From Azolla caroliniana (taxonomy: Eukaryota; Plantae; Polypodiophyta), in the NCBI GenBank assembly GCA_043228905.1, contig JBHGNT010000012.1, positions 14,136,001-14,200,000 of the forward strand: 64,000 nt of DNA. The letters run 5' to 3'. The notes beneath the pieces are model-generated. The model had not been told where the DNA came from. It searched no databases and was given only the letters and a program-made list of their open reading frames with translations. Below are positions 13,533 to 56,978 of this stretch, piece by piece (the first letter of the stretch is position 1; each line of letters opens with the position of its first letter). The position numbers and the translations under genes are program-made.

Positions 13533-16500
13533 TGACGGGAACTAAAACGCTCCGTGTACGCAACGCTCGGCCACAACCGAGCTTAGAATCATGCATAGAA
13601 AACGAAAAATAATGCACGACACAATGGAGAGAAGAGCACACAGGATGTTTACGTGGAAAACCCAAAACTAAGGGAAAAACCACGGCAGCCCACAGGCCGC
13701 AAACTATCACTATGTTAGAATGTACAACAGTGAGTTCACGGAGGCAACGACCTCGTGCTCACGATCCTCGCCGCAGGCGGCAGTTACAACAGAGGCAACG
13801 ACCTCTTTTTCTCTCTCTCTCTCTGTACACATTTATGCGCTCTCACTTCTTGCACCAACAAGAATAACCATACATATAAGTTTGCCCTAAGTCATATTTA
13901 TACTAATATGACTTTTCGGCTATTTACAAATATAGCCTAGATGGACTCTCAGAAACATATTTACGAATATGTCTCTTCATCCGGTGAGCATTCCTCACCG
14001 GGTCTACACCATCCGGTGAGCATTCCTCACCGGGTCTACACCATCCGGTTCTCTGTAGCCGGGTACTCCTCATCCGGTTCTCACCGGGTCTGCACCATCC
14101 GGCTCTCCGTAGCCGGGTACTCCTCATCCGGTTCTCACTGGGTCTGCACCATTCGGCTCTCCGTAGCCGGGTACTCCTCATCCGGTTCTCACCGAGTCTG
14201 CACCATCCGGCTCTCCGTAGCCAGGTACTCCTCATCCGGTTCTCACCGGGTCTGCACCATCCGGCTCTCCGTAGCCGGGTACTCCCCATCCGGTTTCGGC
14301 CTCGGCCGAGTTTGTTCATCGGCACTATTCTTCTTCCTTCCCATCCGGAGGGACCTGTCTCCCAACAAACTCCCCCTTCACTCCGGCATGGGGTGTCTTA
14401 CTAGTCCGATCCTTTTCCGGCATGCATCCAACTTGTCGGGTATCAGAACTTTGGTCGGCATATCTAACCCGTTCTCGGCCGTGTGGATCTTCGTCAGTGC
14501 GAACTCCTGGTCATCTACTCTTTCCCGGATCCAGTGATATCTCCGCTGGATATGCTTCGTCCGGGAATGGTAGGCCGCATTCTTAGCAAGATGGATGGCA
14601 CTTTGACTGTCGCAATAGAGCCGGTATTCATCTTGCCGGATACCAAGCTCTCCGATGAAGTCCTTCATCCATAAGATTTCCTTGCCAGCTTCCACAGCTG
14701 CCATGTACTCCGCCTCCGTGGTTGACAATGCAACTGTCTTCTACAACCTCGACTACCACGAAACAACTCCCCCTGCATATGACATTACATACCCGGATGT
14801 AGACCGGCTGGTATCCACATCAGCCGACATGTCCGAATCGGTGAAACCATCAAGTTGAGGTTTTCCGGAGCCGAATCGGAGACACATATTTGAAGTGCCC
14901 TTCAAATACCGGAGTATCCATTTGACCGCGTTCCAATGCTCCTTGCCGGGATTGCTCATAAACCGGCTCACCACTCCGACTACGTATCCTATATCCGGTC
15001 GGGTACACACCATTGCGTACATCAAGCTCCCGACGGCAGAGGCATATGGAATCTTCATCATATCCACCTTCTCTGCTTTCGTCTTCGGGCTTTGCTTACC
15101 GGATAGCCTGCAGTTTGCCGGAAGTGTCGATCCAACCGGTTTCGCATCTGACATGTTGAACCAGTGAAACACCTTTGTCACGTACTTCTCATGTGACATC
15201 CATAATTGCTTCTTTGACTGGTCCCGAATGATGTGCATCCCCAGCATCTGTCTTGCCGGACCCAAGTCTTTCATTGAGAAGGTTCGGTTGAGAACCTTCT
15301 TCAGCATCCGTATTTTGACTTGGTCTCGTTCGACGATCAACATGTCATCCACGTACAGAAGGAGTATCAGGAAGTCGCCTCCTTCGAACTTCTTCCCAAA
15401 CACGCAGTGATCGGCCTACGTCTTGTGGTACCCTTGATCGGTCATGAAGGAATCGAACTTCCGGTACCATTGTCGGGGAGCTTGCTTTAGTCCATACAGG
15501 CTCTTCTTCAACCGGCATACCAGGTGCTCTTTCCCTTTCTCCACAAATCCTTCCAGTTGCTGCATGTAGATCTCCTCTTCGAGGTCCCCGTGAAGGAATG
15601 TCGTCTTCACGTCCAGCTGCTCTACCTCGAGGTCCATGCTTGTCGCTATACTCAGCACCATCCGGATGGAGGTCATCTTTACCACCAGGGCAAATATCTC
15701 GTCAAAGTCCACACCCTTTTTCTGCTGGAACCCTTTCACCACGATCCTGGCTTTGTATCTCGGGGGTTGCCAGCATCTCCCGGTTTCAACTTGTACACCC
15801 ACTTGTTTCGGAGTGCTCGCTTTCCTTTCGGCAACTCCACCAATTCGTACGTATGGTTCTCATGCAAGGAATCCATCTCGTCCTGCATGGCACTTAACCA
15901 TTTGCGGTTGTGGGTGTCATCCTTCGCTTCTTCGAAGCTTTCCGACTTCCCCTCATCGGTCAGCAGAACATGCTCTACATCCGGAAATCTCCAAGGGGGC
16001 CTTCTATCTCTGAGAGGATATCTCCGTCTTCGAGCTTCGGTAATCGGCTCCTCCATTTGCTCTTCATCCGAATCCGATTCGGGGTCTTGGCCGGTTCTGG
16101 TTTCAGCTTCCTCTACTTCTTCTTCAGCCTATTCGGTATCCTCACCGTAACCAGCTGGTCCCTCGAGTGCTAACTGGTCTCTTGCCGGTTGGGTCTGCTC
16201 ATCGTAGAGTCGATCCTTACTGGTCGACTCGGAGTTCATTGTCTTCTTCTCCGACTCCCAGTCGGTGAGCGTCTTGTCCTCCATGAAGATAATATCTCGA
16301 CTCCGGAATACCTTCTTGTCGACCAGGTCCCACACTCTGTAGCCGAATTCATCGTCACCGTAACCGAGCAATATGCATGGCCGGGTCTTTGGATCTAACT
16401 TTCCTCTCCGGTCCTTAGCTACATGCACGTACGCAAGACACTCGAACACCTTCAGATGCCGGTAGGATACTTCCTTACCGGTCCACACTCTCTATGGCGT

Positions 16501-19201
16501 GTCTCCATCCAAGGGTACTGACGGTGATCTATTTATCACATAAGTCGTCGTCGACAGTGTCTCAGCCCAAAACTTCTTGGGTAGTTTTGCATGCGCTACC
16601 ATACTCCAGACCCTCTCCATTATGGTCTGGTTCATCCTCTCGGCCAGTCCGTTTAGTTCCGGCGTCTTCGGCACGGTAAATTCGAGCCAGATTCCCTTCA
16701 AGCGGGTAGTACTCCTCGAACTGCCCCGGTATTCTCCTCCGTTATCTGCTCGAACCGCCTTCAGCTTCCGGCCGGTTTCTCTTTCCACTCTCGCGTGGAG
16801 CTCCTTGAAGACGGATAGCACCTGATCCTTCGTCTTCAGCGGTGTGGCCCACAGCTTCCGGTTGTGGTCATCTATGAACGTCACGAAGTACTGCGCTCCG
16901 GCATGTGACTTCGTGTCTACTTGACACACATCCGTATGCACCAACTCCAGTGGTGCATTACGTCTCATCGGTGGCCTTGGTCGGAAGGAGGTCCGGTTTT
17001 GCTTACCGGCCAGACAATCAGTGCACTTCTCCAAGTGCACGTTCATCACTGGAATGAGGTTGTCGTCTGCAAGCCTCTTCATCCCCTTCTCACTCATATG
17101 ACACAGCCTCTTGTGCCACAGCTCACCGGCAGTGTCGGATGCAACGTTCACTTCTTCCGGACATAACCGGGCATTCATCAGGTACAGTGTGTTGACCTTC
17201 CGGGCCCGAGCCACAATCAGGCTCCCTTTGCTGAACTTCATGACACCGTTCCGAATGCTACCCGTGTAGCCTTCATCATCTAGCCGACCGGCTGATACTA
17301 GGTTCAGAAGAACCTCCGGAACGTGTCGGACATCCTTCAGCTGCAACTTGCATCCAGTTGGTGTTGTTAGCCACACGTCTCCTATGCCGACAATTCGGCA
17401 TGTGCCTTCATTCCCCATCCGGACACAACCGTGATCACCGACTGAGTAGGATGAGAAGCATTTCTGGTCCGGGGTAAGGTGGAACAACGCTCCGGAGTCT
17501 ACCACCCAGGTCATCTCGTCGCCGGCAAGGTTTATCTCACTCTCCTCAGTGATGAGCATCAACTCTTCTTCACTTGCCACGATTGCCGTCGTTCCCTTCC
17601 GGTCCGGCCCCCTCCGGTATTTACCGTTCCGGTCTGGGGTCCGCTTCGAATCAGTACCGTCGATCTCCTTATCTTTTCGGAAATGCCGACAGTTCTTTTG
17701 GAAGTGTCCCGGCTTGCCGCAATAGAAGCAAGTGGGCCTCCCCCTTGACTTTGACCGTGTCCCTGACTTCTCCCGGTTCTAGGGACTACGGTTTCTATGC
17801 CTTCCACGTTCCGATTCGGTAAGGAGCACTTTGGAGTTGGAGCTCGTATCTTTATCTTTCCGATGCGCCTCCTCATCTAGCAAGCTCGACTTTACTTTGC
17901 TAGGGATAACCGTTTTCCTTCCGGCCCGGCGTTGCCCAAAGTGACAACCAACGTCTCCCAGCTATCCGTGAAGGAACCGAGCAGGAGTAGCGCTAGTACC
18001 TCATCGGCGAGAGGTACTTCCAATGAAGTTGCCTGGTGGATCAGCCCCTGGAAGGCATTCATGTGCTCTGCCATGCTGGAGCCATCTTGGTATCGGAGTC
18101 TTACTAGCTTCCGGAATATTGAAACCTGATTAACAGCATTTTTGTTTTGAAACATTATGCCGATCTTCTCCCACAGCTCATGAGCCTTGCTCTCTTCATT
18201 GAAGTTGTTGTATAAGCTCATGTCGATGAAGCACCGTATGTACGCCGTTGTCTTCATGTGCATCACCTCCCATATTGTGGCGTCGATAATGTCCGGTCTC
18301 TTGTCCCCGAACTGAACTGGTAACCAAAGATCTTTAACCACGAGCATGTCCCTCATCTTCGACTTCCACACTGAATAGTTGGAGCCGGTGAGCTTCAACA
18401 TGCCGCCAAACGATTCGTCCATTTTTTGTGTTGTTTCGCTCTGATACCACTTGACAGGAACTAAAACGCTCCGTATACGCAACGCTCGGCCACAACCGAG
18501 CTTAGAATCATGCACAGTAAACGAAAAATAATGCACGACACAATGGAGAGAAGAGCACACAGGATGTTTACGTGGAAAACCCAAAACTAAGGGAAAAATC
18601 ACGGCAGCCCACAGGCTGCAAACTATCACTATGTTAGAATGTACAACAGTGAGTTCACGGAGGCAACGACCTCGTGCTCACGATCCTCACCATAGGCGGC
18701 GGTTACAACAGAGGCAACGACCTCTTTCTCTCTCTCTCTCTCTCTGTACACAGTTATGCGCTCTCACTTCTTGCACCAACAAGAATAACCATACATATAA
18801 GTTTGCCCTAAGTCATATTTATACTAATATGACTTTTCGGCTATTTACAAATATAGCCTCGATGGACTCTCAGAAACATATTTACAAATATGTCTCTTCA
18901 TCCGGTGAGCATTCCTCACCAGGTCTGCACCATCCGGTTCTTCGTAGCCGGGTACTCCTCATCCGGTTCTCACCGGGTCTGCATCATCCGGCTGTCCGTA
19001 GCCGGGTACTCCTCATCCGGTTCTCACCGGTCTACACCATCCGGCTCTCCGTAGCCGGGTACTCCTCATCCGGTTCTCACCGGGTTTGCACCATCCGGCT
19101 CTCCGTAGCCGGGTACTCTTCATCCGTTTTCGGCCTCGGCCGAGTTTGTTCATCGGCACTGTTCTTCTTCCTTCCCATCCGGAGGGACCTGTCTCCCAAC
19201 A
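13533..19201 (-). mobile_element. Full-length Ty1/copia element, family A, with frameshifts and stops
   Basis: LTRs 13533-14367 and 18452-19201 (TG..CA), TSD CCAAG (13528-13532 and 19202-19206). Minus-strand PBS TGGTATCAGAGC (tRNA-iMet) at about 18438-18449 and PPT AGGGGGAGTT at 14368-14377. Domain order gag-PR(DSGA)-INT-RT(YVDD)-RH. Confidence 0.97.
13975..14295. repeat. 54-bp (2 x 27) tandem repeat in copia A U3, also at 18895-19125
   Basis: ccatccggctctccgtagccgggtactcctcatccggttctcaccgggtctgca repeats with period 54. Copy number differs between the two LTRs. Confidence 0.9.
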
Positions 19202-19884
19202 CCAAGTTGAAACGGACGCCTCCGACTTTGCTATTGGAGTTGTCCTGTCCCAACAAGACGATAAGGGCACACTACATCATGTTGCCTTCTACTCTCGGAA
19301 GTTTACAACCCCGGAAATCAATTATCCGGTTTATGACAAGAAAGGTGCTAACCGACCACAAAAATCTAATTTACTTCACCATTAGTTGTACATTCAATTT
19401 GAGGCAAGCTCGATGTTCATCTTTTCTTGCCCACTACAACTTCGAGATCTTGTTTTGACCAGGAGTTCAACATCGGAAGGCTGATGCCCGCTCTCGGCAA
19501 CCTAATTTCGCATTGCGCCCAGAAGATGACGCATATTCGCAACAATCCCGTTGTTTGTTGAGGCTCGATCAACTTGAGATGTTCACAAGCTGCATGTTGC
19601 ATGATGATTCTTTGCTCAACGAGATCGCCACGGAAACCATGTTAGACCCATTCGCCAAAGACATAATGGCCCGTATCAATGACCCATCCCCAGACATCAA
19701 AAGCTCATATCTCAACCCATTTACAACCTGGGATGGGTTACTAAAGGATCATGTCCTACACGGGTACTACAAAATTGTCATGGTGAACCTCTTGCCTGTC
19801 ACTTTGGGGTCACGAAAACCCTGGAGTTTTGGTGGCCCAAACCTTGGAAATTTATCAAGGAATTTCTCAAGACATGTGATGTAC

Positions 19885-21494
19885 GTGCCTGATCCAAAAT
19901 GGCAAAATTAGCAGAAGTAGAGGAAGCGCAACAACGGCCATCTCGGCAATACTTCGAAGAAAGGGAGTCCTTGCGAAGAGAACTTTTGGAACTCCAACTC
20001 CGCTCAAGTCAGTTCCTTCAGAAGTTAGAAAAAACCGAGGTGCAACGAGCGGCATTAATGGAATTCCTCCAACACCTCAAAATCTCCATGAACCTCATAC
20101 TCGAATGACAGAAAAACCATTGTCGGTAGGAATTAGCCGATAATTCGGATCAACTTATCCAATGCTACGACATGCAGATGCAAAAGTCGGAGGCCCAACT
20201 CGCTAATGTCACAACATCGTGTGCAATCCTCAAGGCAAAGTTCGAACAAGACGCGGCGAAAGCACAAAACGACTTGAACACCCTCCAAGCCAAGTATGAA
20301 ATGGGCGAAGGCCGAATCAAAGCCATAGTGGCTAAACACAGAGTACAACTTAATCAAAAGGTTGAAGAGGCTCTAGCCCGAGGGTGGCAAGAATGGTTGG
20401 TACAGGCAGCCAAATTATAGGTTTTTCGAGCCAATGCCGAAAACTGGAAAAAAGAAGGTCGCGGATTTTATAAGATGGACGAAAGCAACATCCAAATCCT
20501 CTGCGAAGACCTCACCAACGAATACCAAGCCCTAACAAGCATACACACCATGGCCATTAGGAACCACCTTGAGGAATTCAACGACGATCTAATGCTACTG
20601 AGACTGGATGCGGAAGCCTATGAACGAGAGCGTCACCCTGCTGAAAAAGAAGAAGAAGCCACCGCACAGGCATCCACGGCCAATGTACTCAAGGAACCCA
20701 CATTGGCACCAAAAGAAGACAAAGAACCATGGTCGAGAGTGCAAACCGAGCAAGTGGACACACCGATCATAGGACCACTTCCAGAGGCAACCATTCCCAA
20801 GCCCACGACAGAGCTACCAACCGCTAGATATATCAGCTGAGTTGCATGCCAACAAGCCACAGAAGAAGAGCCACCTCTAACACCAACACAACCACCCCCC
20901 GAGGGCATCCTTAGCATTTTGGGAAGAAGACTGTCCCACGGGCGTGCCATGTGTTATTTGTGGGACAAAAGGGATGTACAATGTGAAACAAATCCAAGTA
21001 TATGAGTAGGTAAAGTAGGTGAAAAATGACAATCGGGAATGACCAAGGTAATGGGATATGTGCAACCGAGAATGAAGGCCGAGAAGAAAGGATTGATTGA
21101 AGCGCACCGAGCAGAAAGGGAAGCTATAAAACGAGAAGCAGAATCATAGGGGAGATATACGTATAAGGGAGAGGGATACCCTAGTCTAGGGAGAATTACT
21201 ATTATCTGTCTGATTGAATAGAACTCTGGTCGTGAGCCGTGTAACCTTTGCGTCTAAATCTATTAGTATATTTATCTTTGTGGGTCTAATCTGTCCAAGC
21301 CTCTATCTATGTTATTTGGATTTGTTGTCTTAATTTCAAGTGCAATTTACAAGGTCGATTGTGGCCGACAATTATTTTCCTAATTAACTAGCCATGCAAT
21401 CCCGAGGTTCTTGTCCACCACTACGTATCACGACCCCTTGACCCGATTACCTTAGAAGTAATCGAACCTATGTTATCTCAGAGCAGAGACAACA
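19885..21494 (+). mobile_element. 3' fragment of a non-chromovirus (Tat/Athila-like?) LTR element: coiled-coil extra ORF plus LTR 20952-21494
   Basis: Broken coiled-coil ORFs 19899-20840. The LTR runs TGTTAT...ACAACA with a CTATAAAA box and is preceded by ctgtcccacgggcgtgcca. Confidence 0.6.
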
Positions 21495-22289: not shown

Positions 22290-25200
22290 TAGGGGGAAAA
22301 GAGAAAGAGGGGGGAATTTATACTATTATAATTTATACTTACTATTATACTATTATAATTTATAATGTACAATGTACATTGTAGTATGTAGTCTTGTAGA
22401 CAATAGTATGTACATTTTATAATAGTATATGTCTTTCATTGTTTCAATATTTCATTTCCAAATTCCCCCCTCTTTCTCTTTTCCCCTTGTTTTTTCTTTT
22501 CTTGCTTTCCTTCTTCTCGCTTCCTGCTCCTTCTTCGCGCGCTACTCGTTGCTCCTTGTCGCTTCTCGGTGATTGCACGACATCTGTTGTTTGCCACTCC
22601 ACCACTCAGAAAGTATGTATTTGTCTCACTCTTTTTTTCTCTTTCTCTCTATTTTCTCTGTTTTTCTCTTTTATTGAATCTTTTTTCTTTGAATATTGCT
22701 CATGATAAGCGTGTGACAAATTGGAATGCATTACAAATTGAATATTACATGAGCATGCATGCAGGGAAAATTATATGCAATATCCAAAATTATTAAGTTG
22801 TGCATGTAAATTGAAGACTTTCCATCAAATCGAAGAGGATTCTATACACTAACATTAATCTGTAATAGCTCTGATTGAATGTCATCAGAACTAGATGCAT
22901 GTGTGATATTTAGTAGTAACCCTATTCTAGACACTCAAAGTTCCAGGATGTTATATTGGAAGCATACGAACTCTTGTTTGTGGACAATGTAATGCTCCCC
23001 AAGCAAGCAAGGAAAGTAAAATGTTTGCTTGTCTAGAATACAAACGCCATGTAATATTCTTGCCTTGTGCTTTCATCAAGCTCAAACTATTAAAAACGTT
23101 TCATAATATATAATATACCACATCAAATGTATTGCTCTTGTTTGCCTTCTTTACACTTTTTTGCATTAAAAATCTTCGTTAACTTCTTGCATTATCACAT
23201 AAATGTTCAAGTGCATTGTCCTAGAAAAGTTAGTGTATGGAGATGTGGAACAATGACATAGCTTTACCATAACCAAATTTATGTCCACACAATAAGATGT
23301 AGAAGTGGCATTTTAAGATTTATCATCAATTCAATAGTCTCGTGTATTATCTTCGCATGTCAACGGTTGTTTAGCACTCAACATTTCACACACATGACTC
23401 ATTCAAAAGAATATGTTTTCCCTTAAGCCATAGGTTTCACTTATTTAGACAATATAAATTCACGGGGAATGGCAACCATAAAGTCATTGATGATGACTTC
23501 ACTAACATATATGAATTGTTTGTGTTGGCTTGTGGCATTATTGAAAAAACAATGAGATGCACGAGTGGACATGATGGGGAAAATGACACATTGAAATTGA
23601 AGGCATGTTAAGATTTCCCTCTAATTTGTTGATTATCATGCATAAATAAGATCTCTCAAATGGAGTTGAAAAACGATACTTGGAAATCCATATGGACATT
23701 TACATACGGGCAAAATTCTTCTAAAAGTACTCAATTGATTTCTATTGTGTTATATAGTCTTTTTCCTTTATTGTTTGTCGTTCATGGAGAAATTGTTATC
23801 CATAATGTAGATAACGGTAGCTTCATCATCATCTATTATGGCCAAGTCACATAAAGTCTCCCTTTTCGATGGTCATGGAATTTGAGGGCCCAATAAAATA
23901 TTGGATTCTTTTTACAAGTTTATGCTTTATGTGCAACAAGTCATCTTATGGCTATTTTTGAATCGCAATTATTTAGAGTACATTGATTGCTTCGTGACTT
24001 CCTCAATGATTGCAAATTTAGGTTTAGTTTTTTACAATAGTTTCAACTAAGGAAGGGCGTGCGATGACAGGGCCATTGTTAACCATTTCCTTTATTGGAT
24101 TCCTTTGTCTCCCATCATTGAATTTTCTTATCTTTGCTTTATGTATGTATCTCTTTTAATAAGGAATAACTTTTTTAGACACTACCAATTTCTCTTCTTT
24201 TTTATCCCTAAGTATATTTACCTCACCATATTGATTAAATGTCAAGAAAGGTTTTGAAGAAACATATATGGCAGTTATATAAGGAATGTAACATAGAAGA
24301 TGGAACAACCTCACCATGCTCACATTTTACATTCAATCAATTTTGTTTTCTATAACATCTTATAAGTTCAAACTCAATTATTTATGGGTTCATGAAAAGT
24401 CGACGAGCATTATTACCTAGCATTTTTATTGTCCTCTTATTTTAATATATCCACTACTTTTTTCTCTTGATCTTTTTCTTCAATATTGTTTGCAATATAT
24501 TTGTTCCCTTAATTTCTATCACATTTACATACATGGATTTGCATGTGCATGTAAGCTAATATGAGCCTTCATCTTTCTTTCTTTCTTTTGATAGATTGGA
24601 AGATCTAGAGTGGAAACTATCCTTTATTGCCTCGTAATCTTGCATATATCCCAGGTATTTTAATCTTCTTATTGTATTTAGAATAGATTTAATTTGTGGA
24701 TTTCATGGATTTTATATATGTGTTTCCCCTTCTTATAAATCAAATCATAGATTATGTTAGTCCAACATACTCTACGTCAAGGTACCTTGATTGCCCATCT
24801 CATCTTTGTTTTTTTTCTCGGTTTGTGAATTCTCTCACTTTCAAGAGTATGTCCTGCCCCAAAAAACATAGATCACAACAACCTTCTATTAAGAGTGTGT
24901 TGCAAGAGAGCACATCTTAATGATACTCCAAATAATGAGGAAGAGGTTGTCACAAATGTAAATGTGTAAACATCTTCTAATAAAACAAAAAGAAAGTGGA
25001 GAAACCAATGGACTTTGCTCCACCCATGGGCATATTTGACAAAGTCCTTATTAGGTGATGAAAAAATTAAATGCATGTGGTGTGAAGATGCAAGAAGGAA
25101 TAATATTTTTACGGATGGTGGATCTCTTAGCATGCAATTGTCTTCATTGAATTAGGATGCTAAGTCATTCGATCATGTAACAGCAAGTGCCATGTATCAT

Positions 25201-27405
25201 GTAAATATACAAAAGGAAAATGCAAATGTGAAAGGCCCAATGGATGACAAAATTTCAGAAATCATGCATTTAGAATATGAGAGGATAATCTTATGCATGA
25301 AGTTGGTTCATTTTTATGCTTGCAATGATATTCCATTAGAGAAATATGTAAAACAATGTCAGTTACAAAGAGAACTTGGTACTCCAAATGCCCCTGCCTC
25401 AAATGAATATGGTGCTTATGCTAACGCTAAATCTGCAAGAGAATTCTTAATGGCTATTAAGAACCACACAAGAAAACTCTTGTATGACGAAATTCGTGGA
25501 AGTCCATTTTTCTCCATCTTGATTGATGAAAGCACAGATTGGACATTGGAAAAACACCTCATTATCTATTTCTTGTACTTAAGTGAAGGTGGCAAAGGGG
25601 AGCCACAGTGTAAATTTGTGCGTCTTCTTCCGGTGGAAAATGTGAAAGCTGAAGGTATCTATAATACTATCAATGAATTCATTTTGGAGAGCAATTTAGA
25701 TTTAAAAAAACTAGTGGCTTTTGCAAGTGATGGGGCATCATCTATGGTAGCGAAGAACAAATTATGGAGCAATTTCTAAGTTTCAATCCATGATGCCTAA
25801 TATTTTGGGAGTGCATTGCATTGCACATCGTGAATCACTTGCCATAAAAGATGCATATATAATGTCTCATGCACATGTGTTTAGCTTCCTTGCTGCATTT
25901 GCAAATAAAGTATACTCTTGGTTGGGAAAGTCAACTAATAGACACAAGGAGCTAAAAGAAATAATGAAACGACATGGTAAGGGTGATTTGAAGGTGCTTA
26001 AAATTCACTCCATAAGATGGTTATCTCGAGGCCAAGTAATGGAGAGACTAGTTACACTTATGCCTGCAATTTTAGAACAATGGGAAAAACATGAGAAAAA
26101 ATGGTACGAGTATGCTACTATATTCCAAGTGCAATTTATGTTACACCTATTGGCAAATATTCTTGTGGAATTAAATAAATTAAATGAGCAGTTCCAAAGG
26201 GAATTAATGCATGTAACTATGCTTGGTGTTCACTTGGATATCATCCACAAGAAACTTCGAAGAAGATATTTATCTTGTGAAACATTTGGCACTAGGTCTA
26301 TGTTTCTTGCAAACTTTCTATCTAATGTGAAAGATGGCATACTCACATATATTGGATGTGATAATGTTAGTCATTCACATCCATTGAAGTTTATACCAAT
26401 TCCAAACCCAAAGGAGGTAACAAAACGATGAAGAAGACTAGTAAGTGGTCTTGATAGTGAGAATGAAGATAGTAGTGATTTCAACTTCAATATTTTTCAT
26501 GGTAATGTTGAAAATGGTGGTTTGGATTAATGCATTAGCATTGGAAAGGACTTTGTCCAACATGTTATCGATGCTTTAAACAATCGTTTCCCCATGTTAC
26601 ATTTTTCAATGCTATAAAGTTGTTTAATCCATCTTCATATCCCATTGAGGAAAATGAAAGAGAGAAAAAGACAAAGGAATGGTTGCAAAAACTTATTGGG
26701 AAGTTTAATATTGATAGGCAAATTGTTGACATGAAAAGATGCTTCAATGAGCGAGAAGATTTTGTTGGTATGCTTGTTAGAATTGCTAAAGGAAGAGGAA
26801 TGCATGATGCATGGGATATTTGTTGCAAAGCACAATCTTGGTGGCAATTATTTCTAGGTATTATGCGATTGTGGCAACTATGTATGACTATTTCTATTAG
26901 TACAGCAGCATGTGAACGAGGTTTTTCACGTCAAAATATCATAAAAAATGATATTAGAAATGGTTTATCTTTGGAAACTTTAGATGCTTTGATGTTTATA
27001 TCCTTGAATGCTCAAGATACATGAAACATTTGTTGGAGGGATATATTTAACCTTTGGTTTGAAGATAAAGAGAGAAGGACAATATCATTAAAGTAGACAC
27101 ATATTGCACAATGCTTAATATGAGGAGTCACTGTATGATAAAGATTTTTTGTGTTTTTTGGGCTTTAAGAAATATATGATGATTTAAGTATTCAATTTGT
27201 ATGTTTTCATTATCTTTGTGAGCTAGTTATGTTTATTTGTGTATCATTGTATACTTTCTATAGTAATAAAATGTATAATAATGAAGCATCATATAGAGCT
27301 TTTCATTATTAAAACTTGTATGTCAAATGACATGTTAGTTTTTGCACTCTCGTGTCATGTGACATAAATCTTTAAAAAATGCCCGTCAAAAAACTTAAAG
27401 ACTAA
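22290..27405 (+). mobile_element. hAT DNA transposon remnant (transposase about 24850-27095)
   Basis: CxxC zinc finger, FFSILIDESTD, ASDGASSM, GVHCIAH (CxxH), RWLSR and the STAACERGFS dimerisation motif. AT-rich flanks. Matching TIRs were not found. Confidence 0.9.
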
Positions 27406-28248
27406 CCCGTCGTTTGCTTCTCAAAACCCTTTCCTGTTGAAGCCATCGACGGGCACGTCCTCTCGTCAGGAGCAATTACTCAAAGTACGATCCCATTAGG
27501 GCTTCGTGTGGGCTCACACTTGGAGGAGCTCCCCTTTTACCTCATCGAATCTCCTCGACATCCGATCGTTTTAGGACTAACGTGGTTGGAGGCGCACAAT
27601 CCAATTGTGGATTGGTGCAATCACTCAATCCCATTTAGCGAGCTAGGATGCTCGCGCAAAACTATGAAGGTCAATTCAGTTTCACATCCTTCGAAGAAGG
27701 TTGTTTCTGACTCGGCCACCCCACCCTCGGTCCAGGATGGGGTCGTTTGTGGCGCCGTTTCTAACACACTCCACGTTATTCCCAACAAATGCAAAGACTT
27801 CTCCGACATATTTGAGAAATCTAATGAAGATCGTTTGTCCGAACACCGGCTTTACAATTGTCCGATTGATCTTCAAGAAGGTCCGTGCCCACCCATTGGT
27901 CCTCTATATGTGTTGTCTGCACCAGAGCTGAAGGCCCTTCGTGTGTATCTCGATGAGAACATCAAGAAAGGATTTATTCAACTTTCTAAATCGTCGGTCG
28001 GGCCCCCATATTATTCGTGAAGAAGAAGGACGGCTCTCTACACTTATGCGTCGACTACCTGTCGTTATCCGCTACCTCTAATCCCCGAACTCCTTGGTCG
28101 GCTCCGCATTACTCATGTCTTCTGCAAAGTTGATCTACGTTGAGCATACAATATAATACGCATCAAGCCGGGGGATAAGAGAATACAAGGTAATGCCTTT
28201 TGGTTTTACTAACGCCCCAGTTGTTTTTCAACATATGATAACAACACC
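27406..28248 (+). mobile_element. Tcn1-like gypsy protease-RT piece
   Basis: VEAIDG, HPIVLGLTWLEAHNPIVDW, KKKDGSL and NAPVVFQHM. It resumes the element of 21495. Confidence 0.9.
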
Positions 28249-31127: not shown

Positions 31128-31758
31128 TGTTGGGAGATAGGTCCCTCCGGATGGGAAGGGAGAAGAACAGTGCTGATGAGCAAACCGGATGAGGAGTACC
31201 CGACTACAGAGAGCCGGATGGTGCTGACCCGGTGAGAACCGGATAAGGAGTACCCGGCTACGGAGAGCCGGATGGTGCTGACCCAGTGAAGAGTGCTCAC
31301 CGGATGAAGAGACATATTCGTAAATATGTTTTCTGAGAGTCCATCGGGGCTATATTTGTAAATAGCCGGAAAGTCATATTAGTATAAATATGACTTAGGG
31401 CAAACTTATGGTATAGTTGTCATTCTTGTTGGTGCAAGAAGAGAGAACTCGTAACTGTGTACAGAGAGTGAGAGAGAGAAAGAGGTCGTTGCCTCTGTTG
31501 TAACCGCCGCCCATGGCGAAGGTCGTGAGCGCTAGGTCGTTGCCTCCGTGAGCTCACTGTTGTAATCATTGTGATATAGTGATAGTTTGGAGTCTCTGGA
31601 CTCCCGTGGTTTTTCCCTCTCAGGGTTTTTCCACGTTAAACATCCTGTGTACTCTTCTCTCCTTTGTGTCGTGTGTCTTACTTTTCCCGTTTTCTGTGTA
31701 TGATTCTAAGCTCGGTTGTGGCCAAGCGTTGCGCATAACGAGCATTTAGTTGCCGTCA
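31128..31758 (+). mobile_element. Solo LTR related to copia family A
   Basis: TGTTGGGAGA...CCGTCA, reverse-complement homologue of 18452-19201. TSD GAAAG (31123-31127 and 31759-31763). Confidence 0.95.
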
Positions 31759-32561
31759 GAAAGCTGATTCTTGTTATCCGTATAGGTGTACGGGATGATT
31801 AGGGTATAATGTGTATGGTGTGGTGTGTAATATGTAATATGTAATATGTAATATGTATACGAATGTGTGAGGATGAGTATGTGTGAGCACATGCACAATT
31901 ATGTGCATGTGACAAAAGTGTAACGATCGTCTTTTTGTAACTGTCATTATTTACCGTTACATTATGTATTATATAAACCCCTTATGGGGCATGTAATGGA
32001 TATACCTTTTTCCCCTCTCACATTTTATGTCATTTTCTATCTAGATCTCTCACTATCAAAACCCCCTTGGGAGGGGGGGTGAAGCCATTTTTTCCCCTCT
32101 CACATTTTATGTCATTTTCTATTTGTCTTTCTCTCTAGCTCTCTCACTATCGAAACCCTCTTTCTAGGCTTCACCCCCCCACCCCAACAACACTTTTGGC
32201 ACACCCGAACGGCCGACCCTCCTTTGAGAGGAAGTCACTCCCTCACTCCCTCCCCGTCTCCCTCACTAATTTCTCTCCTCACTCTCTCTACCTAAAACCC
32301 TAGATACCCCAAAGTTCATCTCTATGTCCATCTCTCTCATTCTGTGTATTTGCGTTGTGTTTGTGTTATGCATGTTTCTATTTGTGTGCACTTCCAAAAG
32401 ATGAAGGTGAAGAAGAGGATGATGACGATGATTATGAGGAGGAAAGTGTTGCAGTTCCTGGCATAGAAGAATGGCAATAGGAGATAGAAGAATGAATGGG
32501 CCCGACAACTGCCTCATGGCCAGATTGAAGGCCATCACCAAGCACCTCCTCTGCATCGCGC

Positions 32562-35500
32562 TGTCGGGGTAGTTTTGGTTCATGCGGCGAAGTCGCAGGG
32601 ACTAAGGTTTAAAGGAGTTGGCTATATATTTTATAAGGCTTGCGCACAATGTTAGAAAGATTAAGGATAGGAAGAACAAAAGTTAGAAGTAATGTACGAG
32701 CGACAAATGAGCATAGATAAGAGATGAGAGACAATGTATGATTTAAAAAGTGAAAATGTATTATAAGAACAAGCTTTATATTACCAAAGTTACATTGTCG
32801 ATCACAAGATGCGACTTTTCTTTCGCTGAATTCTAGATTTGAACCCTTGAATTCAACTTTAAACCACAAGCCTCTTCACCCACAAGCTAACTTATTTGTT
32901 TGACTATATTATTCTCTAACTTTCTCTTCTCTCCCCTTTTGTTTTCCTTTCCCCTCTTTTTATAAGTATTGTCATGCATATGGTAATGTGTAGGAGCATG
33001 GCATGCATGTAATGCATGAGTTACCTGTGATGCTTGATCGCCATTTGGCGCACATGCATTACATTTGATGCATGATAGCCATCATGCTCATTTGAGCTCC
33101 CATGTATGAAAATATATATGTGATAAGTATAATGATGGATATAACCCTAAAAAAAATAACCTAGCTTAGTGGTGTATGCTTTGTGCTTGATATACAAGGT
33201 TGAGGGTTTAAGTCCCTCAATTTTACTTAATACAATATTTAAGTTTATTCTTATATAGTGAAGCACATTCTTGACAATATTTCAAAAAACAAATAACCTA
33301 CCATAGTGGTATATACATTGTGCTTGGTTTATAAGGTTGTGTGTTCAAGTGTTTGAAATATTACTGAATTCAATATTTAAATTTATTTTTATATCGTGAA
33401 GCAAATCCTTCACGACACCCACCCGCTCTGAACTTGCACACTAGTTGTGCAAAGTTCATCCAAAATCTTGAAAAAACTCTTCATTCCATTTTTGTACTGG
33501 ATGTTCCCTCAACCATTCTTTGTTTCTTTCACGGTTACACGTCATGGTTAAGAACTGGTCCGTCTTCCTTGCATCCTGACTCTTGATCCTCACGAAAGTC
33601 GAATCATCATTAATCACAATTGTTTCCATCCTTACCACATTGATGTATGATTCACCATCCTTTGTTTACATACTTACTACGCTATTGTATGGTTGACCAA
33701 GGATGACAGGGTAGGTTGATCCATCTTGCACATAGTAATTTTGATCCACCGACACATCTCCCATTGTTACTTTCACACTGGAACATGCTCTGAATAGATC
33801 CTCCGTCATCTCTGTTGCAACTCTTTTCTTCGACCCATGATTCTTATCGATTGGCCACCTTCCTTGAGCATAACATTCTGAAGACATCATGTTAATTTTT
33901 TATCCATGATCTATCAAAGAAATATAAGGAATTTGTTGCTCCGCAATTTTTGTAGGCCCCTCTGTTGTTGCTTGAGCCCAATGGTTCTTTGTATAATGAC
34001 TCCTATCCCCTTCATTATTTGCAATATTATTTATCTTCTTTACACTTGCAACATTGATGGTGTCACGATCTAGATCTTGGAGTGTTGCTGAACAAACTCT
34101 CGTAACTTCTTCCGTGACGTGTTTTAAATCTGTCACGTCTTCTGTGTCTGAAGCAAGCTGGAAAGCTGGATTTCTCTTCCCTTTTACTTTATCAGCTTCT
34201 TTCGACTCAGGAGCATCTTTTTCCATCTCTCTTCTCTCTTGTTCTTGTGTCTCATGCCTTTTTGCCAGATTAACCTCCTCAGCTCTCTTTCGCTTCTCTT
34301 CCACTAGTACATCTTGTGCATTCACTTGGGCGAATGTTGATAGTGCGTCTACTGGATCATTCCATCCAGTGAAGTGTCGTATTTCATCTCATGCTCTTTT
34401 TAATTCATCCACTCGAACCTTCCCTTTTCTTGCATACTCCAACACACGCTGCCAAAAGTCAAATCCACCATATGAGTCTTCTACACACAACCCTAAGGTT
34501 GTCACGGATTGTATCGCTTGAGTCGTTTCTCTCTCGACATCTTCCATTAGCTTTTTCATTCCACCTTTCCCGAAGTTGAGCTGGATTGGTTGTTGAGTCT
34601 TTGTCGAGTGAATCTTTCCATCTTGATAGTAGATTTTATCATGATTAAGAGAATCCCTATGTTCTTGATAGTCTTTCTTTTGGTGGTCAACACTATCACA
34701 CCACATACACCTTCGGACCATTCCACCTCCTTGCCTTGATGAAGTCGAGCTTTGTCTCGATTCAAGCTTCGTCACTTTGATCGACAAGTCTTTCATGCCT
34801 TTCACCAATTCATGCAAGAGTGAATCTTCTATTTTCTTCTCTCCCGAGTCGTTCCCCGTTTCGTCTCCCTTCTTCTCCAACAGCTCCATAAACCATAACT
34901 TTCTTTTACAAAAATGGGTGCAAGCCTTTTTCACCTCCTCCCAATCTTCAGTAAGTCCACTAGGACTATTTTGATCTTCCAGAAGCATTCCCAAGTCTTT
35001 CCTGTCTTTAATATTAGTAGCTTGTAGAAACAATATTACTTTATCTGGCATTATTATATTTCTATCCCTAACATTTAATTGCTCAAATCCTTCTGAAAAC
35101 TCTTTTAACAATTCCAAAACACTAAAATGTTTTTCAAACTCTACCCAATCCATGAAAGCTCGCCTTGTCATCCTTGACATATCGTTGAGGTTGTATTCAT
35201 TCAATAATGCTCTTTCGAAAGTCGCCCATGTCTTATGCTCTCTTTGTAGTTCCCGGATCCTTTCTTGTAGCCCAATCGCAACGACTCAACTCAAGCTATT
35301 AATTTTTGCCACTTCATTGACACCTCGTTTAAGCATTTCCTCTTTGTAAATCTTCAAAAATATTGTTCAATTCATACCTTCGAAGATCCCTACTCGTGCG
35401 AGAATATTGTCAATGGCTTTGTCGACGCTTGACATCATCCCTTGCTCCCGCATCATTTGTTCCATCATCGTACACATAAGCCTCATTTTCTCCTCCATTT

Positions 35501-36390
35501 TTCCTTGTCGTCACCTTCATGTCGGGCACCAAATGTCTCAAAGTAGTTGTGGTTCGTGCGGCGAAGTCGCAAGGACTAAGGTTAAAAGGAGTTGGCTATA
35601 TATTTTATAAGTCTTGCGCACAATGTTAGAAAGATTAAGGATAGGAAGAACAAAAGTTAGAAGTAATGTGTGAGCGACAAATGAGCATAGATAAGAGATG
35701 AGAGATAATGTATGATTTAAAAAGTGAAAATGTATTATAAGAACAAGCTTTATATTACCAAAGTTACACTGTCGATCACAAGATGCAACTTTTCTTTCGC
35801 TAAATTCTAGATTTGAACCCTTGAATCCAACTTTAAACCACAAGCCTCTTCACCCACAAGCTAACTTATTTGTTTGATTATATTATTCTCTAACTTTCTC
35901 TTCTCTCCCCTTTTGTTTCCTTTCCCCTCTTTTTATAAGTATTGCCATGCATATGGTAATGTGTAGGAGCATGGCATGCATGTAATGCATGAGTTACTTG
36001 TGATGCTTGATCGCCATTTTGCGCACATGCATTACATGTGATGCATGATAGCCATCATGCTCATTTGAACTCCCATGTATGAAAATATATATCTGATAAG
36101 TATAATGATGGATATAACCGTAAAACAAATAACCTGTCTTAGTGATGTATGCTTTGTGCTTGATATACAAGGTTGAGGGTTTAAGTCCCTCAATTTTACT
36201 TAATACAATATTTAAGTTTATTCTTATATAGTGAAGCACATTCTTGACAACATTTCTAAAAACAAATAGCCTACCCTAGTGGTATATACATTGTGCTTGG
36301 TTTATAAGGTTGTGGGTTCAAGTGTTTGAAATATTACTGAATTCAATATTTAAATTTATTTTTATATCGTGAAGCAAATCCTTCATGACA
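32562..36390 (-). mobile_element. Gag-protease-only (TR-GAG-like) gypsy element nested in the previous element
   Basis: LTRs 32562-33417 and 35534-36390 (about 857 bp). Minus-strand PBS TGGTGCCCGACATG at about 35517-35531 and purine tract GAGCGGGTGGG at 33418-33428. Gag has CMWCDSVDH and the protease has LIDHG and PVILGQP. No RT or INT in the 2.1-kb interior. Possible 4-bp TSD GCGC/ACGC. Confidence 0.88.
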
Positions 36391-36944
36391 ACGCCTCCTC
36401 TACGGGGGGCAACAGATGCTCCCCCCTCTGATATCCCCTCATGACAATCTCCAGCTCATCCTCGCCGACTTGGAGCTAGCGTCTAAGGAGGAGCGAGATC
36501 AACGCAACAGAGCAACGCGGAATTAGTGAAGGAGAGAGATTTCCTGGTGCAGTCCTTGGAATGCCGCGACAAGCAATGCGAAGCTCTTTCATCGAAGATG
36601 GAGGCCATGGATCGCCTACACGCACAGCAGGCGAAGGCGAAGAGTGGTTCTTATGACGATGTCAGCTGATGGAGGCGACAAGATCAAAAGTAGTAAGTTA
36701 AATGATTGACAAATCGATTGAAGAAGTCTCTCTCCTGCTTACATCTCGTCATCTGATCTGAACTCAGAAGAAGAAGAAAGAAGAAGACCTAGAGAAGGAA
36801 AGACAAAGATAGAAGGGAAGGAAACACTTCGTGCCCGTGGCGTACGTGAGGTCTGCAGCCCGACTGTTCACGGCCTAAACTGCTTTTGCTCCTTGGGCCT
36901 TTGCTCATGGTCCTGCTGATTTTGGAGCTCTTGATGGTAGCCGT

Positions 36945-37497
36945 GCATCGAGCAGTCGTTCCATGCCTTCTGGCTATGGCCGGTGGAGCTCTATTGAACT
37001 TGCTCCTCGCGACCCTATCCTTGGCGTCCCTTCTACCTTCCTTGCCAACACTAATCCTACAAAAATCAACGTTGGCGTGGGTGCTTATCGCAGTGATGAG
37101 GGGAAACCTGTTGTGCTTGAATGTGTTAGAGAAGCAGAACATCGTATTGGTGGCCGGGAGTCAAATCATCACAACATCTTCAAGGATGCTAGTGTCAAGT
37201 AGCATACATATAGATATTACAAGCCCAGCACAAGAGGCTTGGATTTTGATGGATTGAAGGAGGATTTGAAGAAATCTCCACGAGGTTCCATCATTCTATT
37301 GCATGCTTGTGCCCATAATCCAACTGGGGTGGATCCTACTCTTGAGCGATGGAAAGAACTTTCACAAATTCTCAAGGGTAAAGGGAATTTTCCATTGTTT
37401 GACATGGCGTATCAAGGATTTGCGAATGGTGACACTCAAAAGGATAATCAAGCCATCAAGATCTTTTTAGAAGGTGGTCATCAACTGGCTTGTGCAC
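36945..37497 (+). pseudogene. Captured aspartate aminotransferase fragments (mitochondrial type, intronless, internally deleted)
   Basis: APRDPILGV, KINVGVGAYRSDEGKPVVLECVREAE, LLHACAHNPTGVDPT and FDMAYQGFA. It ends before the PLP-binding lysine. Confidence 0.93.
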
Positions 37498-37519
37498 GTT
37501 TAGGGTTCAATCATGGGAC

Positions 37520-37708
37520 TATTTAGAACATCTTCGAGACTCCTTGTCCGCCCTCCCTCCATGCCCATCAAGATTTTGATCATCGATTCCATTGTTGCAC
37601 TCTTCCGATCTAATTTAGATAACAATGCAAGAGATCTAGCAAGAAGAATGGAGTGGTTCTTTAAGCTTTCCAGCAAATTGAAACAGTATGCACATCAGTA
37701 TGACATAG
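37520..37708 (+). pseudogene. Captured RAD51-paralogue (XRCC3-like) fragment
   Basis: Walker B region IKILIIDSIVALFRS, followed by DLARR..FFKLSSKLK..AH.Y.IA. Confidence 0.8.
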
Positions 37709-37721
37709 CAGGTGGTGGATC

Positions 37722-37890
37722 ATGTTGAGCAAGGAAGAGATTGAGAAGATGGTGCAAGATGTAGACAAATACAAATCTGAACATGAAGAACACAACAAGA
37801 AAGGGGAGTCTAAAATCTCTTTGGAGAACTATGGTTACAACATGAGAAATACAATTAACGATGATAAGATTGTTGATAAATTGGATGTCG
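37722..37890 (+). pseudogene. Captured cytosolic HSP70 C-terminal lid fragment
   Basis: [22 protein letters not shown]...K.SLENY.YNMRNTI.DDKI..KL. Confidence 0.93.
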
Positions 37891-38787
37891 CCGCAATTGC
37901 CACTGCCACCATCCGCTAGAATCGAAAGGCTGGAATATGAATTTCAAAAATCGAACAAAGAGAAAAGAGAAAGGGGTAGAAAGAAAATTTTCAGAAACTC
38001 GAGGGCACACAAACAAATTTCGGAAATAGAAGGGCAGGACATGAAATTTCTAAAACCGGAGGGTACTTAATATAATTTTAGAAAAAAAAAACCCTGAGGG
38101 GTAGGACATAAAAGTTCGGAAACACAACTCATCACTACACAAGAAAACATATCTATGTCTATATATACACACCCACATACACCCACAATTATTAATAAAC
38201 CTAAATAATGGTACCACAGTTGATAAAACGATTGGTGCGCGATCCAATCGTGCAATTATGCTGACCGAACGAGAAGGTTTGTGTCAAGCTAGCTCCAATC
38301 GGAGTTATCGATCGTCGAGGAATTTCCGACGTGTGAGAGAAGACATATGTAGTTCCAATCAACAAGAGTTTTTCCGGCATGGGCTTGTGGGTCCGACGTG
38401 TAATGCACTGTCCCACAGGCATGCCAGGTGTTATCCGTATAGGTGTATGGGATGAATAGGGAGGGTATAATGTGTATGGTGTGGTGTGTAATATGTAATA
38501 TGTAATATGTATACGAATGTGTGAGGATGAGTATGTGTGAGCACATGCACACATTATGTGCATGTGACAAGAGTGTAACGGTTGTCTTTTTGTAACGGTC
38601 ATTATTTACCATTACATTATGTATTATATAAACCCCTTATGGGGCATGTAATGGAAATACCTTTTTCCCCTCTCACATTTTATGTCATTTTCTATTTGTA
38701 TTTCTCTCTAGCTGCCTCACTATCGAAACCCCTTGGGAGGGGGGTGAAGCCATTCTAGGCTTCACGCACCACCCCAACAACAATTCT

Positions 38788-55300: not shown

Positions 55301-56978
55301 TTGGTGTCGTTCGCCACATGTTGTAGAACGCTCACGTCGACGTATTGCCGAATGGTTGCAACGGCTTTCCGGTTCAGAAGCCTCCATTCCGTCTCAAGTA
55401 CCCCCTTGGGTATTTCCGACCTGTCGATCGGTTCATACAGGTCCCGAACAATGAGCAGATCCTCCATCTTTATCTTCCAGTCGGCGTAGTTCTGCGCATT
55501 CAGCACCATCATCCCCGGCTGCCCGCTGCTGCCGCCTTCCATTTTCTGCACTGCAGTCGCTCTGATACCAGATTGTTAGGAATTGACGCTTTCAAAACCT
55601 TCACCTCTCGACCACAACCGAGGAAACACGAATCAATGCAGCAGAAAATCAAAAACACAGAGAGAGACTCGAATGCACAGGGTTTAGCGTGGAAAACCCT
55701 AGACGGGAAAAAACCACGGGAGTGCAAGACTCCAACTATCACTATACGCAGGGAATGTACAATGGCGAGCTGCAAGGCGACGACCTTGAGCTCGTTGTCC
55801 TCGCCACAGGTGGCGGTATTACACAGAGGCGTCGACCTCTTCCTTTCTCTCTCTCTGCTGCTCTCACTTCGCTCCCTCTAAGTGGAAAACAGAAAAATGA
55901 GTAACAACTACAAAACTGTTTGCCCTAAGTCATATTTATACACATATGACTTTCGGGCTATTTACAAATATAGCCTCAAGGGCCCTTGGCAAACATATTC
56001 ACAAATATGTCCCCGCATCCGGATCTCTCTCCGGGTACATTCGTCATCCGGCTCCGTAGCCGGGGTCTTCATCATCCGGCTCCGTAGCCGGGGTCTTCAT
56101 CATCCGGATCCGGAATCGGGTCTTCATCATCCGGCTCTGATACCGGGTACTCCTCATTCGGGTCTTCATTCCCGATTCCCGGACATCCGACTATCCCATC
56201 CGGAGGGACCGTAATCCCAACACATAGTTCTCTCCTCGAACCCTATCAAGACAACACCATCCCAAGTCGTCTTAAACAACCTCCACCCCGATCAAACTTG
56301 AAGATGGACCTGAGTACGAGGTTGTCGTCATCCTCGATTCCAAGATTGTTCTCAACAAGTTCTACTATTTTGTCGATTGGCTAGGATATAGTCTTAGCGA
56401 GCGTACTTGGGAACCAATAGAGAATGTGAACAATGCTTGTGCTCTTCTTGAAGACTTCTATCGTCAATATCCAGACAAATTGGGTCCTCAATCCAAAACG
56501 ACTCGTGACACTCGTCGTTTTAAAGGGGAGATAATGTCATGATATGGCAAGACTCGAACCCATGACCTTATGTTACATGGGTCGAGCTCTTGACCATTAG
56601 ACTATATTTTGTAATACAAAAAATATTATTTTCATTTAAGTTTTACTATAGAAAATTGATGTATATTCCAGATTTCTCTGGAACATTCTAGAAACTTCAG
56701 GAGTACTCCTGAGAACACTATAAAAGGTGGCACAAGGCATTGTTTCAAACCAAATCGGTTCAAGGCCAGTCTTAAGCCTCCTAGCTACTATTGTATATTA
56801 TTTTAACATAATATATATCTTTCATTATCATCATTCTCTCTCTCACTCACTCACTCTTTCCTTCACTTGAGAGTTCTACACCTCCCTTAGTACTAATCCT
56901 CATCTTTTAGTACTAATTCCTTCTCTATCTTAGTATTGTTCCTAATAGCACTTCTCTGTCTTAGTAATATTCCTGATA
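46309..56978 (+). mobile_element. Complete but decayed Tcn1-like gypsy chromovirus with a nested copia
   Basis: LTRs 46309-46764 and 56535-56978, TSD GTTGG, PPT aaaggggagataa at 56522-56534. Motifs LLDSGANS, DLRGAYN, EADASDF, integrase core and chromodomain EYEV..ILDS..YFVDWLGY. Most of gag is deleted near 47120. Confidence 0.95.
50825..56222 (-). mobile_element. Full-length Ty1/copia element, family B
   Basis: LTRs 50825-51500 and 55574-56222, TSD CATAG, PBS at 55559-55570, PPT at 51501-51510. Gag-pol has frameshifts near 54880 and 52540, a small RT deletion near 52625 and a TGA at 52042-52044. Confidence 0.97.

Follow-up and report, generated by a model that had tools for sequence, protein, structure and literature searches.

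The window examined here, a 64,000-nt stretch of the Azolla caroliniana genome (contig JBHGNT010000012.1, positions 14,136,001 to 14,200,000), contains at positions 31772-38782 a long terminal repeat (LTR) retrotransposon in which both internal ends carry sequence related to the 3' end of tRNA-Arg(UCU), in opposite orientation (Table 1). Its direct repeats can be aligned from end to end, possess TG..CA ends and lie within a target-site duplication, the first base of the 3' LTR being 38429, one base before an alternative reading at 38430. The LTR pair is 94.4% identical over 337 aligned sites (Kimura two-parameter distance, K2P, 0.059), and the copy is old and decayed. An 82-nt tandem duplication within the 5' LTR (32007-32088 and 32089-32170) is absent from the 3' LTR and is skipped by most contigs of the family (joints of ~83-107 nt), which indicates a post-insertion change in the 5' LTR or a minor variant. 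Overall, the element belongs to an LTR-retrotransposon family of very high abundance, within which it is a plus-oriented, dead and non-autonomous copy, its sense strand being devoid of the gag-PR-RT-RH-INT set of its own that an autonomous Ty3/gypsy element would carry. There is little doubt about its general architecture, which combines two opposed tRNA-Arg sites and has a copy of the tRNA end in the place of the polypurine tract (PPT).

The first of these sites is the primer-binding site (PBS), a motif which the first-pass annotation had reported just after the 5' LTR and which is indeed found where it was placed. Its state in the family was determined from Logan contig pieces aligned to 31700-32570 (449-1363 per run) from four public runs bearing three species labels. 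In all four runs (62, 40, 73 and 19 contigs), 88-93% of the contig depth carried an A>G difference at 32203, indicating that the family PBS reads TGGCACGCCCG and that the window copy has undergone CpG decay; a second CpG decay, C>T at 32206, was encountered in ~35% of the depth. The family-consensus PBS is an 11/11 complement of the tRNA-Arg(UCU) 3' end, and the motif is therefore conserved and perfect across the family, although lack of conservation had been named beforehand as one way in which the proposal could fail. Depth stayed at the LTR level through the PBS, dropped to about one third by 32239, followed a subfamily level to ~32440 and was single copy beyond, and no variant of at least 10% was seen in the CTTT spacer among the best-supported rows listed for the family contigs. 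By chance, an 11-mer with at most one mismatch is expected ~1 time per window, and the chance of finding it within 7 nt of an LTR end on the right strand is ~6e-5.

The second site, referred to here as the module, lies immediately upstream of the 3' LTR and is a tRNA-sense stretch (38378-38426) in which ~37 nt of tRNA sequence are interrupted by a 13-nt insert. Its first part covers the variable loop, the 5' strand of the T-stem and the T loop to A58, and its second part continues to the CCA end; this second part lacks one of the two Cs at 65/66 and, in the window element, shows two CpG-to-TpG/CpA decays. The first-pass annotation had recognized only the terminal portion of this stretch, and on that portion it was accurate: CTGTCCCACAGGCATGCCA is found at 38408-38426, followed by GG and then TGTT, and its reverse complement TGGCATGCCTGTGGGAC is located at 38410-38426 on the minus strand. 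The tRNA-derived sequence as such was thus correctly identified, whereas its extent had been underestimated and the insert overlooked. Equally, both internal ends, read in opposite sense, do become TGGCACGCCCG when CpG decay is reversed, the 5' site directly so by the family consensus. The 17-mer, with at most three mismatches allowed, occurs twice in the window, compared to 0.06 expected. Neither ARAGORN nor Rfam detected a tRNA anywhere in the window, and the material at the 3' end amounts to the insert-split 3' 37 nt of a tRNA with no full cloverleaf, unlike a tRNA gene or a tRNA-derived short interspersed nuclear element (SINE).

To our knowledge, plus-strand synthesis begins at an RNase H-resistant PPT in every retrovirus and LTR retrotransposon studied so far, and the PPT also defines the left LTR edge. 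No such tract precedes the 3' LTR of the window element, where the longest stretch of purines measures 5 nt within the final 80 nt and 3 nt within the final 40 nt, in agreement with the first-pass claim. Similarly, over the 80 nt that precede the LTR, purine runs reach at most 4-5 nt in four of the five module copies read (the window element and the metagenome contigs L009, L010 and L115 introduced below), and the normal PPT that could have turned up elsewhere in the family was found in no relative. At a second module site in the window (Table 1), a 10-nt purine run does precede the module; we considered this run, GGGAAGAAGA, as a candidate PPT and rejected it, as it consists of the last codons (...ILGRR/ILEEE) of an upstream reading frame, brought adjacent by a ~110-nt deletion relative to L010 and contig L120. 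Chromoviruses in the same window served as controls and display normal PPTs, GTGAAGGGGGAG-TT-TGTTGGG in three copies and AAAGGGGAGATAA-TGTC, with runs of 9-10 nt. In the three GTGAAGGGGGAG copies the PPT 3' end lies 2 nt before TG, so that the CCA end of the module occupies the place of the PPT 3' end.

We also observed that chromovirus-type LTRs open with an antisense tRNA-like unit directly after a normal PPT (AAAGGGGAGATAA|TGTCATGATATGGCAAGACTCGAACCC...); such LTR starts occur at 56538-56606, at 10441-10510 and in contig L121 (755-800), and they are distinct from the tRNA-end module.

Relatives were sought by scanning metagenome contigs for exact GTCCCACGGGCGTG, which returned 119 loci, 116 of them chance matches; ARAGORN found no tRNA in the contexts of the GTCCCACGGGCGTG matches alone, and a scan of viral_contigs with the 17-mer gave 0 matches. 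Filtering for CCA, a 2-nt spacer and TGTT left three contigs from ENA assemblies, L009, L010 and L115. Read in element sense, which is the minus strand of the locus, L010 opens with the complement of a complete tRNA including CCA, situated at the 5' internal end of a mini-element (positions 1190-1265; tRNA-Arg (tct) in ARAGORN, 71 bits for Rfam tRNA, CCA encoded). The contig ends at this whole-tRNA copy, before any 5' LTR. As its CCA is encoded and its position is 5' internal, the copy appears to be a read-through product of the primer, which in turn suggests that tRNA-Arg(UCU) is really used for minus-strand priming in this clade. The tRNA 3' end recovered in this way is ...GGGATTGTGGGTTCGAGTCCCACCGGGCGTG-CCA, i.e. 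...GTCCCACCGGGCGTG-CCA, and its last 11 nt are perfectly matched by the family PBS. The first-pass annotation had thus named the right tRNA and given the wrong end for it (...CACTGGGCGTG). Together, the observed match and the L010 fossil point to tRNA-Arg(UCU) as the probable working minus-strand primer of the family. In the window element itself, the first ~45 nt of the 5' leader weakly resemble the rest of the tRNA-Arg complement in the same order, including GAAGTCA of the anticodon arm (local alignment score 24, shuffles 15.3 +/- 2.7, p ~0.01), and 32208-32250 may be a decayed extended PBS like that of L010.

Together with the second site of the window, five module copies could be read directly. 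L009 belongs to the same LTR family as the window element, is alignable over the LTR and the ~300-nt 3' internal region and has the same module layout in undecayed form, whereas L010 and L115 are members of a different LTR family (TGTTGTCC...), keep TGGGTCCGA, carry a 13-nt insert of different sequence and share the same part 2. Overall, at least three LTR families are represented (TGTTATCCG, TGTTACCG, TGTTGTCC and TGTTATTTG), and all five copies have the CCA, a 2-nt NG spacer and the same 1-C deletion. This identity indicates that the module is inherited via the template and is not re-copied from tRNA in each cycle. Judged from these alignments, the module is conserved across LTR families whose LTRs are barely alignable with each other. 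The CCA end faces U3 over the 2-nt spacer in every case, as the first-pass annotation had described for the window copy, a geometry that suits the terminus of a plus-strand primer. Furthermore, 31772 is exactly the point at which contigs of other copies diverge. The loose-end consensus before it, obtained for two other species (run X8, ...GCATTGACCCACAAGCCTGCCAAG; run X6, ...CAGTACTACATGCATGACAAG), corresponds to window 38400-38428 with noise and with an admixture of 5' LTR flanks, which indicates that the module is family-wide and present in other species too.

The 13-nt insert could form a 4-bp hairpin (GTGT/RCAC versus GGAC/GTCC) in which three pairs are changed on both sides between two lineages; as a single contrast between two lineages, this is a weak hint. 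The insert sits exactly at A58. In eukaryotic tRNAs this residue is m1A (1-methyladenosine), which blocks pairing and reverse transcription, and this block may be relevant to the build of the module.

Table 1. Features of the element at 31772-38782 and of the second module site, in positions of the window
Feature	Position	Strand	Remarks
5' LTR	31772-32192	+	421 nt; TGTTATCCG...CAACAACA, TGTT...AACA
Spacer CTTT	32193-32196	+	4 nt, between U5 and PBS
PBS TGGCACACCCG	32197-32207	+	11 nt, 4 bases 3' of 5' LTR
5' leader	32208-32568	+	32208-32239 in ~1/3 of family copies, to ~32440 subfamily, rest single-copy
Nested LTR element	32569-36390	-	gag/protease-like open reading frames only; LTRs ~849 nt, 95-96% identical (alignment)
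Mosaic of intron-less host mRNA pieces	36391-38089	+	all plus sense
Coiled-coil piece	~36440-36670	+	
Aspartate aminotransferase piece	36963-37526	+	Pfam Aminotran_1_2, 5e-20
Rad51/XRCC3-like piece	37513-37728	+	Rad51, 3e-4
HSP70 C-terminus piece	37725-37919	+	1.2e-4
A-run	~38080	+	
3' internal region, family-derived	38090-38377	+	alignable with metagenome contig L009
tRNA copy part 1, CATGGGCTTGTGGGTCCGA	38378-38396	+	tRNA-Arg(UCU) positions 40-58, 16/19 matching
Insert CGTGTAATGCACT	38397-38409	+	13 nt, exactly between tRNA positions 58 and 59
tRNA copy part 2, GTCCCACAGGCATGCCA	38410-38426	+	tRNA positions 59-76 with CCA
Spacer GG	38427-38428	+	2 nt, between CCA and U3
3' LTR	38429-38782	+	354 nt
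Target-site duplication ATTCT, left copy	31767-31771		same 5 bp flanks both LTRs
Target-site duplication ATTCT, right copy	38783-38787		perfect, 5 bp
Second module site, CTGTCCCACGGGCGTGCCA then TG	20931-20951	+	undecayed part 2, same missing C, before 3' LTR of another family
LTR of second family, TGTTATTTG...GAGACAACA	20952-21494	+	homologous to L010 LTR
Truncated pol fragment near second site	12794-13219, 19203-19911	+	

The orientation of the element follows from its interior. Host mRNAs are captured by template switching during minus-strand synthesis, and the sense of a captured piece is therefore that of the element's sense strand; the presence of at least four captured host mRNA pieces in plus sense thus indicates that the outer element is plus-oriented. 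The TATATAAA box at ~31972 in the 5' LTR is compatible with this orientation without being decisive. A minus orientation, which had been foreseen as an objection to the first-pass proposal and which we initially favored because of gag/protease open reading frames (ORFs) on the minus strand, was dropped, since these ORFs sit in a nested element with LTRs of its own. The nested element codes for a protease-like tail and for a gag whose zinc knuckle has decayed. We saw no clean target duplication at its ends, and it is outside the replication signals of the outer element. Each of its 849-nt LTRs holds two tandem tRNA/SINE-like units (33149-33350 and 36122-36323). The relatives point to the same orientation: their extra ORF (eORF) or pol shares the strand of the module and lies upstream of it, and module-preceded LTRs lead into flank and no PBS. 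The order of the signals is accordingly PBS, coding sense, tRNA-sense module, 2 nt and 3' LTR.

At the second module site, part 1 of the module is gone through the ~110-nt deletion mentioned above. The LTR that follows ends, like the L010 LTR, in AGAGAYAACA, after which come unrelated flank and no PBS. In L010, L115, L120 and at the second site, a conserved ORF tail (...PE[DGN]IL.IL.E.) on the strand of the module ends ~110 nt ahead of it. In the window this tail belongs to a coiled-coil eORF 3' of pol (19899-20840; P0001 and P0002), for which 64-68% identity was recorded in two ENA contigs and no Pfam match was obtained; it is a candidate accessory protein of the clade. On the plus strand, the eORF is preceded by RNase H (8e-15) and a zinc-finger fragment of integrase, with RVT_1 (3.5e-24) further upstream. 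As no 5' LTR in the window matches the LTR at 20952, the link of the upstream pol (element A, 11026-19911) to this LTR is unproven. A homology search with the eORF retrieved two short ENA contigs only, L120, which stops inside the module, and L121, which is interrupted, and no intact autonomous relative.

Several further insertions were noted in the window and among the relatives. A minus-oriented chromovirus (13528-19202) has landed within the RNase H coding sequence of a gypsy element in plus orientation; PFQV|ETDAS is restored across the insertion, with a CAAG-type duplication; the interrupted host runs from gag at ~11026 to the integrase zinc-finger fragment at 19911 and continues gapless into the coiled-coil eORF. 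At 24500-28100, a hAT-like transposon (DUF4371 and hAT dimerisation domain, plus strand) interrupts a gypsy copy with gag from 21693. In L115 (780-1020), a polyphenol-oxidase-like piece in sense orientation is directly joined to the 3' internal part of the module-bearing element near AACAGACG, a sequence that comes after the PBS in L010; this junction reflects either a further gene-fragment capture or 5' truncation.

As for the role of the module, we consider it somewhat more likely than not that it acts as the plus-strand priming signal of the family, judging from its position and conservation. In the model we favor, tRNA-Arg(UCU) would start the minus strand on the 11-nt 5' PBS of the RNA. 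The complement of the module on minus-strand DNA, which reads TGGCACGCCC... from 5' to 3', could then anneal a tRNA 3' end, whose extension would proceed across the 2-nt spacer and on into U3-R-U5, plus-strand DNA beginning at the base after CCA. Removal of the primer would leave NG-TGTT at the left end, and integrase would trim the 2 extra nt after CA. The leading candidate for the primer, though still a tentative one, is another molecule of tRNA-Arg, or a 3' fragment of it, paired with the module complement in minus-strand DNA. The fixed spacing and the conserved CCA fit a site that pairs with the tRNA itself, as does the copying of tRNA positions 40-58, for which the 11-nt PBS offers no partner. 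The next candidate, rather unlikely in our estimate, is the element's own RNA copy of the module, left in place and cut after CCA by RNase H with a specificity already needed for removal of the tRNA primer. Generalized to the whole clade, the tRNA version would mean that one host tRNA serves as primer for both strands, the plus strand being started by a second tRNA-Arg molecule or a 3' fragment of it, and that the PPT and PPT-specific RNase H cleavage are dispensable; we put this forward with some reserve, as a possibility slightly below even the leading primer candidate. Consistent with a signal that works in cis, PBS and module are kept in a derivative that lacks any coding sequence, and this derivative did transpose, as its intact target duplication indicates; survival of the module under these circumstances is as expected of a cis-acting replication signal.

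A number of observations weigh against plus-strand priming by the module. The case for priming comes from DNA sequence, the copies read directly are only five, and we know of no precedent for tRNA priming of plus strands. The 1-C deletion and the 13-nt insert break pairing with the real tRNA beyond 10-11 nt, the fold of the module is not distinctly stable (z-scores -2.0 to +0.2), and in the decayed window copy the duplex energy of PBS/leader and module is no better than that of shuffles. In addition, the 5' spacer of the window element is 4 nt rather than 2, and the family was absent from every RNA run.

The alternative that accounts best for the same data is that the module merely pairs with the element's own 5' PBS (11 bp, G+C-rich) while something else primes the plus strand, such 5'-3' contact serving RNA circularisation or dimerisation, control of tRNA loading or assistance in strand transfer. 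PBS and module are exact complements in the family consensus, the L010 ends pair at -53.6 kcal/mol compared to -35.9 +/- 4.5 kcal/mol for shuffles (p 0.002), and contacts between 5' and 3' ends have precedents in Ty3, Ty1 and Drosophila Gypsy (PMC5371799, PMC1635307). Pairing of this kind leaves three features unexplained, however, namely the missing PPT, the exact 2-nt distance between CCA and U3 in every family and the presence of the copied positions 40-58 without a partner in the PBS, and we regard it as improbable, though it is the strongest of the competitors of plus-strand priming.

Two further explanations appear far less likely, and about equally so. According to one, which the first-pass annotation had offered as an option, the element primes its own minus strand: the tRNA-like 3' copy, cut after CCA, would prime at the PBS without host tRNA, as a 3'-located analogue of Tf1. 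The module does have the CCA end and the complementarity to the PBS that this requires; nevertheless, the extended PBS of L010 copies a real tRNA with a full cloverleaf and CC at 65/66, not the single C of the module, so that a real tRNA was the primer at least there. According to the other, the module is a functionless fossil of aberrant reverse transcription (primer read-through followed by rearrangement) that hitch-hikes beside U3. A whole-primer read-through copy does exist in the clade, at the start of L010, and the window copy is dead. On the other hand, the 1-C deletion, the position of the insert, the CCA and the 2-nt spacing have been kept across barely alignable LTR families and at least three species labels, the module is retained in amplified non-autonomous derivatives, and a PPT would still be required where none is present. 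Least likely of all is a minus-oriented element in which TGGCATGCCTGTGGGAC at 38426-38410 is an ordinary 17-nt PBS and the 32197 motif incidental, since its attractions, a minus-strand LTR-CC-TGGCA... that resembles a textbook LTR-PBS junction and the minus-strand gag/protease-like ORFs of the interior, are offset by the separate nested element in which these ORFs lie, by the uniform plus sense of the captured mRNA pieces, by the perfect conservation of the 32197 motif and by relatives with coding sequence upstream of the module and, in L010, the whole-tRNA complement at the opposite end, and since it would still lack a PPT and still have a tRNA-end copy before the other LTR.

If plus-strand priming by the module is correct, a large and recently successful plant clade has exchanged the PPT for a copy of a tRNA end, which would show the plus-strand priming step to be evolvable and provide a natural system for the study of primer choice by reverse transcriptase and RNase H. 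The missing C would act as a built-in barcode, by which a host tRNA primer (CC, ...CCCACCGGGCG) can be told from element RNA (single C, ...CCCACGGGCG, with the 13-nt insert before it). In practical terms, LTR-annotation tools that require a PPT would mis-score or mis-orient such elements, which make up a large share of the genome. We found no description of a tRNA-sense, CCA-ended copy that replaces the PPT in the literature covered, most subscription journals lying outside this coverage, and novelty is accordingly unproven; literature matches for the sequence strings themselves were to unrelated primers only.

Among known systems, the closest overall resemblance is to the Tat/Ogre/Retand group of Ty3/gypsy elements. 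In the available portion of the survey by Neumann et al. (2019, PMC6317226), tRNA-Arg is the main PBS type in TatIII and Ogre and common in Retand, and the PPT is mentioned, without analysis, as a general feature of LTR retrotransposons; the PBS string of the window element is absent from the supplements of that study. Shared with this group (PMC6317226) are direct LTRs with TG..CA ends, a 5-bp target duplication, a tRNA-Arg PBS after the 5' LTR and, in relatives of the window element, an extra ORF 3' of pol. In contrast to the group, the window element has a tRNA-sense CCA copy instead of a PPT and no coding capacity, and the likeness rests on the tRNA-Arg PBS, there being no pol (aRH, integrase) in the window element for lineage assignment.

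A second tRNA-related site near the 3' end of the genome has been described for Ty3 and Drosophila Gypsy, where it is complementary to the tRNA (PMC5371799; Gabus et al. 2006, PMC1635307) and, in Gypsy, dispensable for cDNA synthesis (PMC1635307). The bipartite PBS of these elements is similar to the situation reported here in the location of the second site, and 5'-3' communication via the primer tRNA is conceivable in both. Their 3' site, however, is complementary to T/D arms or anticodon/T stems, binds the tRNA on RNA and coexists with a retained PPT, whereas that of the window element is tRNA-sense, has a CCA end 2 nt from U3 and replaces the PPT, and is thus of a different type than a bipartite PBS. 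Self-priming elements such as Tf1/Sushi and Tcn1 likewise contain a segment of their own RNA that is complementary to the PBS. In Tf1 this segment is the transcript 5' end and the PBS has no tRNA complementarity, whereas the PBS of the window element matches tRNA-Arg and the L010 fossil shows that the tRNA is used, which sets the element apart from Tf1-type self-priming, where the complement of the PBS is found in the element's RNA instead of a tRNA.

In hepadnaviruses, primer translocation between DR1 and DR2 lets one short repeat serve the initiation of both strands, as module and PBS would do here, although these viruses belong to a different family, prime the minus strand with a protein and the plus strand with a capped RNA oligomer, and use no tRNA. 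As regards the interior of the element, LTR retrotransposons that carry gene fragments in rice and sorghum (PMC3726574), in the portion of that account available, similarly have the interior swapped for sense pieces of host mRNA while LTRs and priming signals are kept; compared to these, the 3' signal retained by the window element is the tRNA-end module rather than a PPT.

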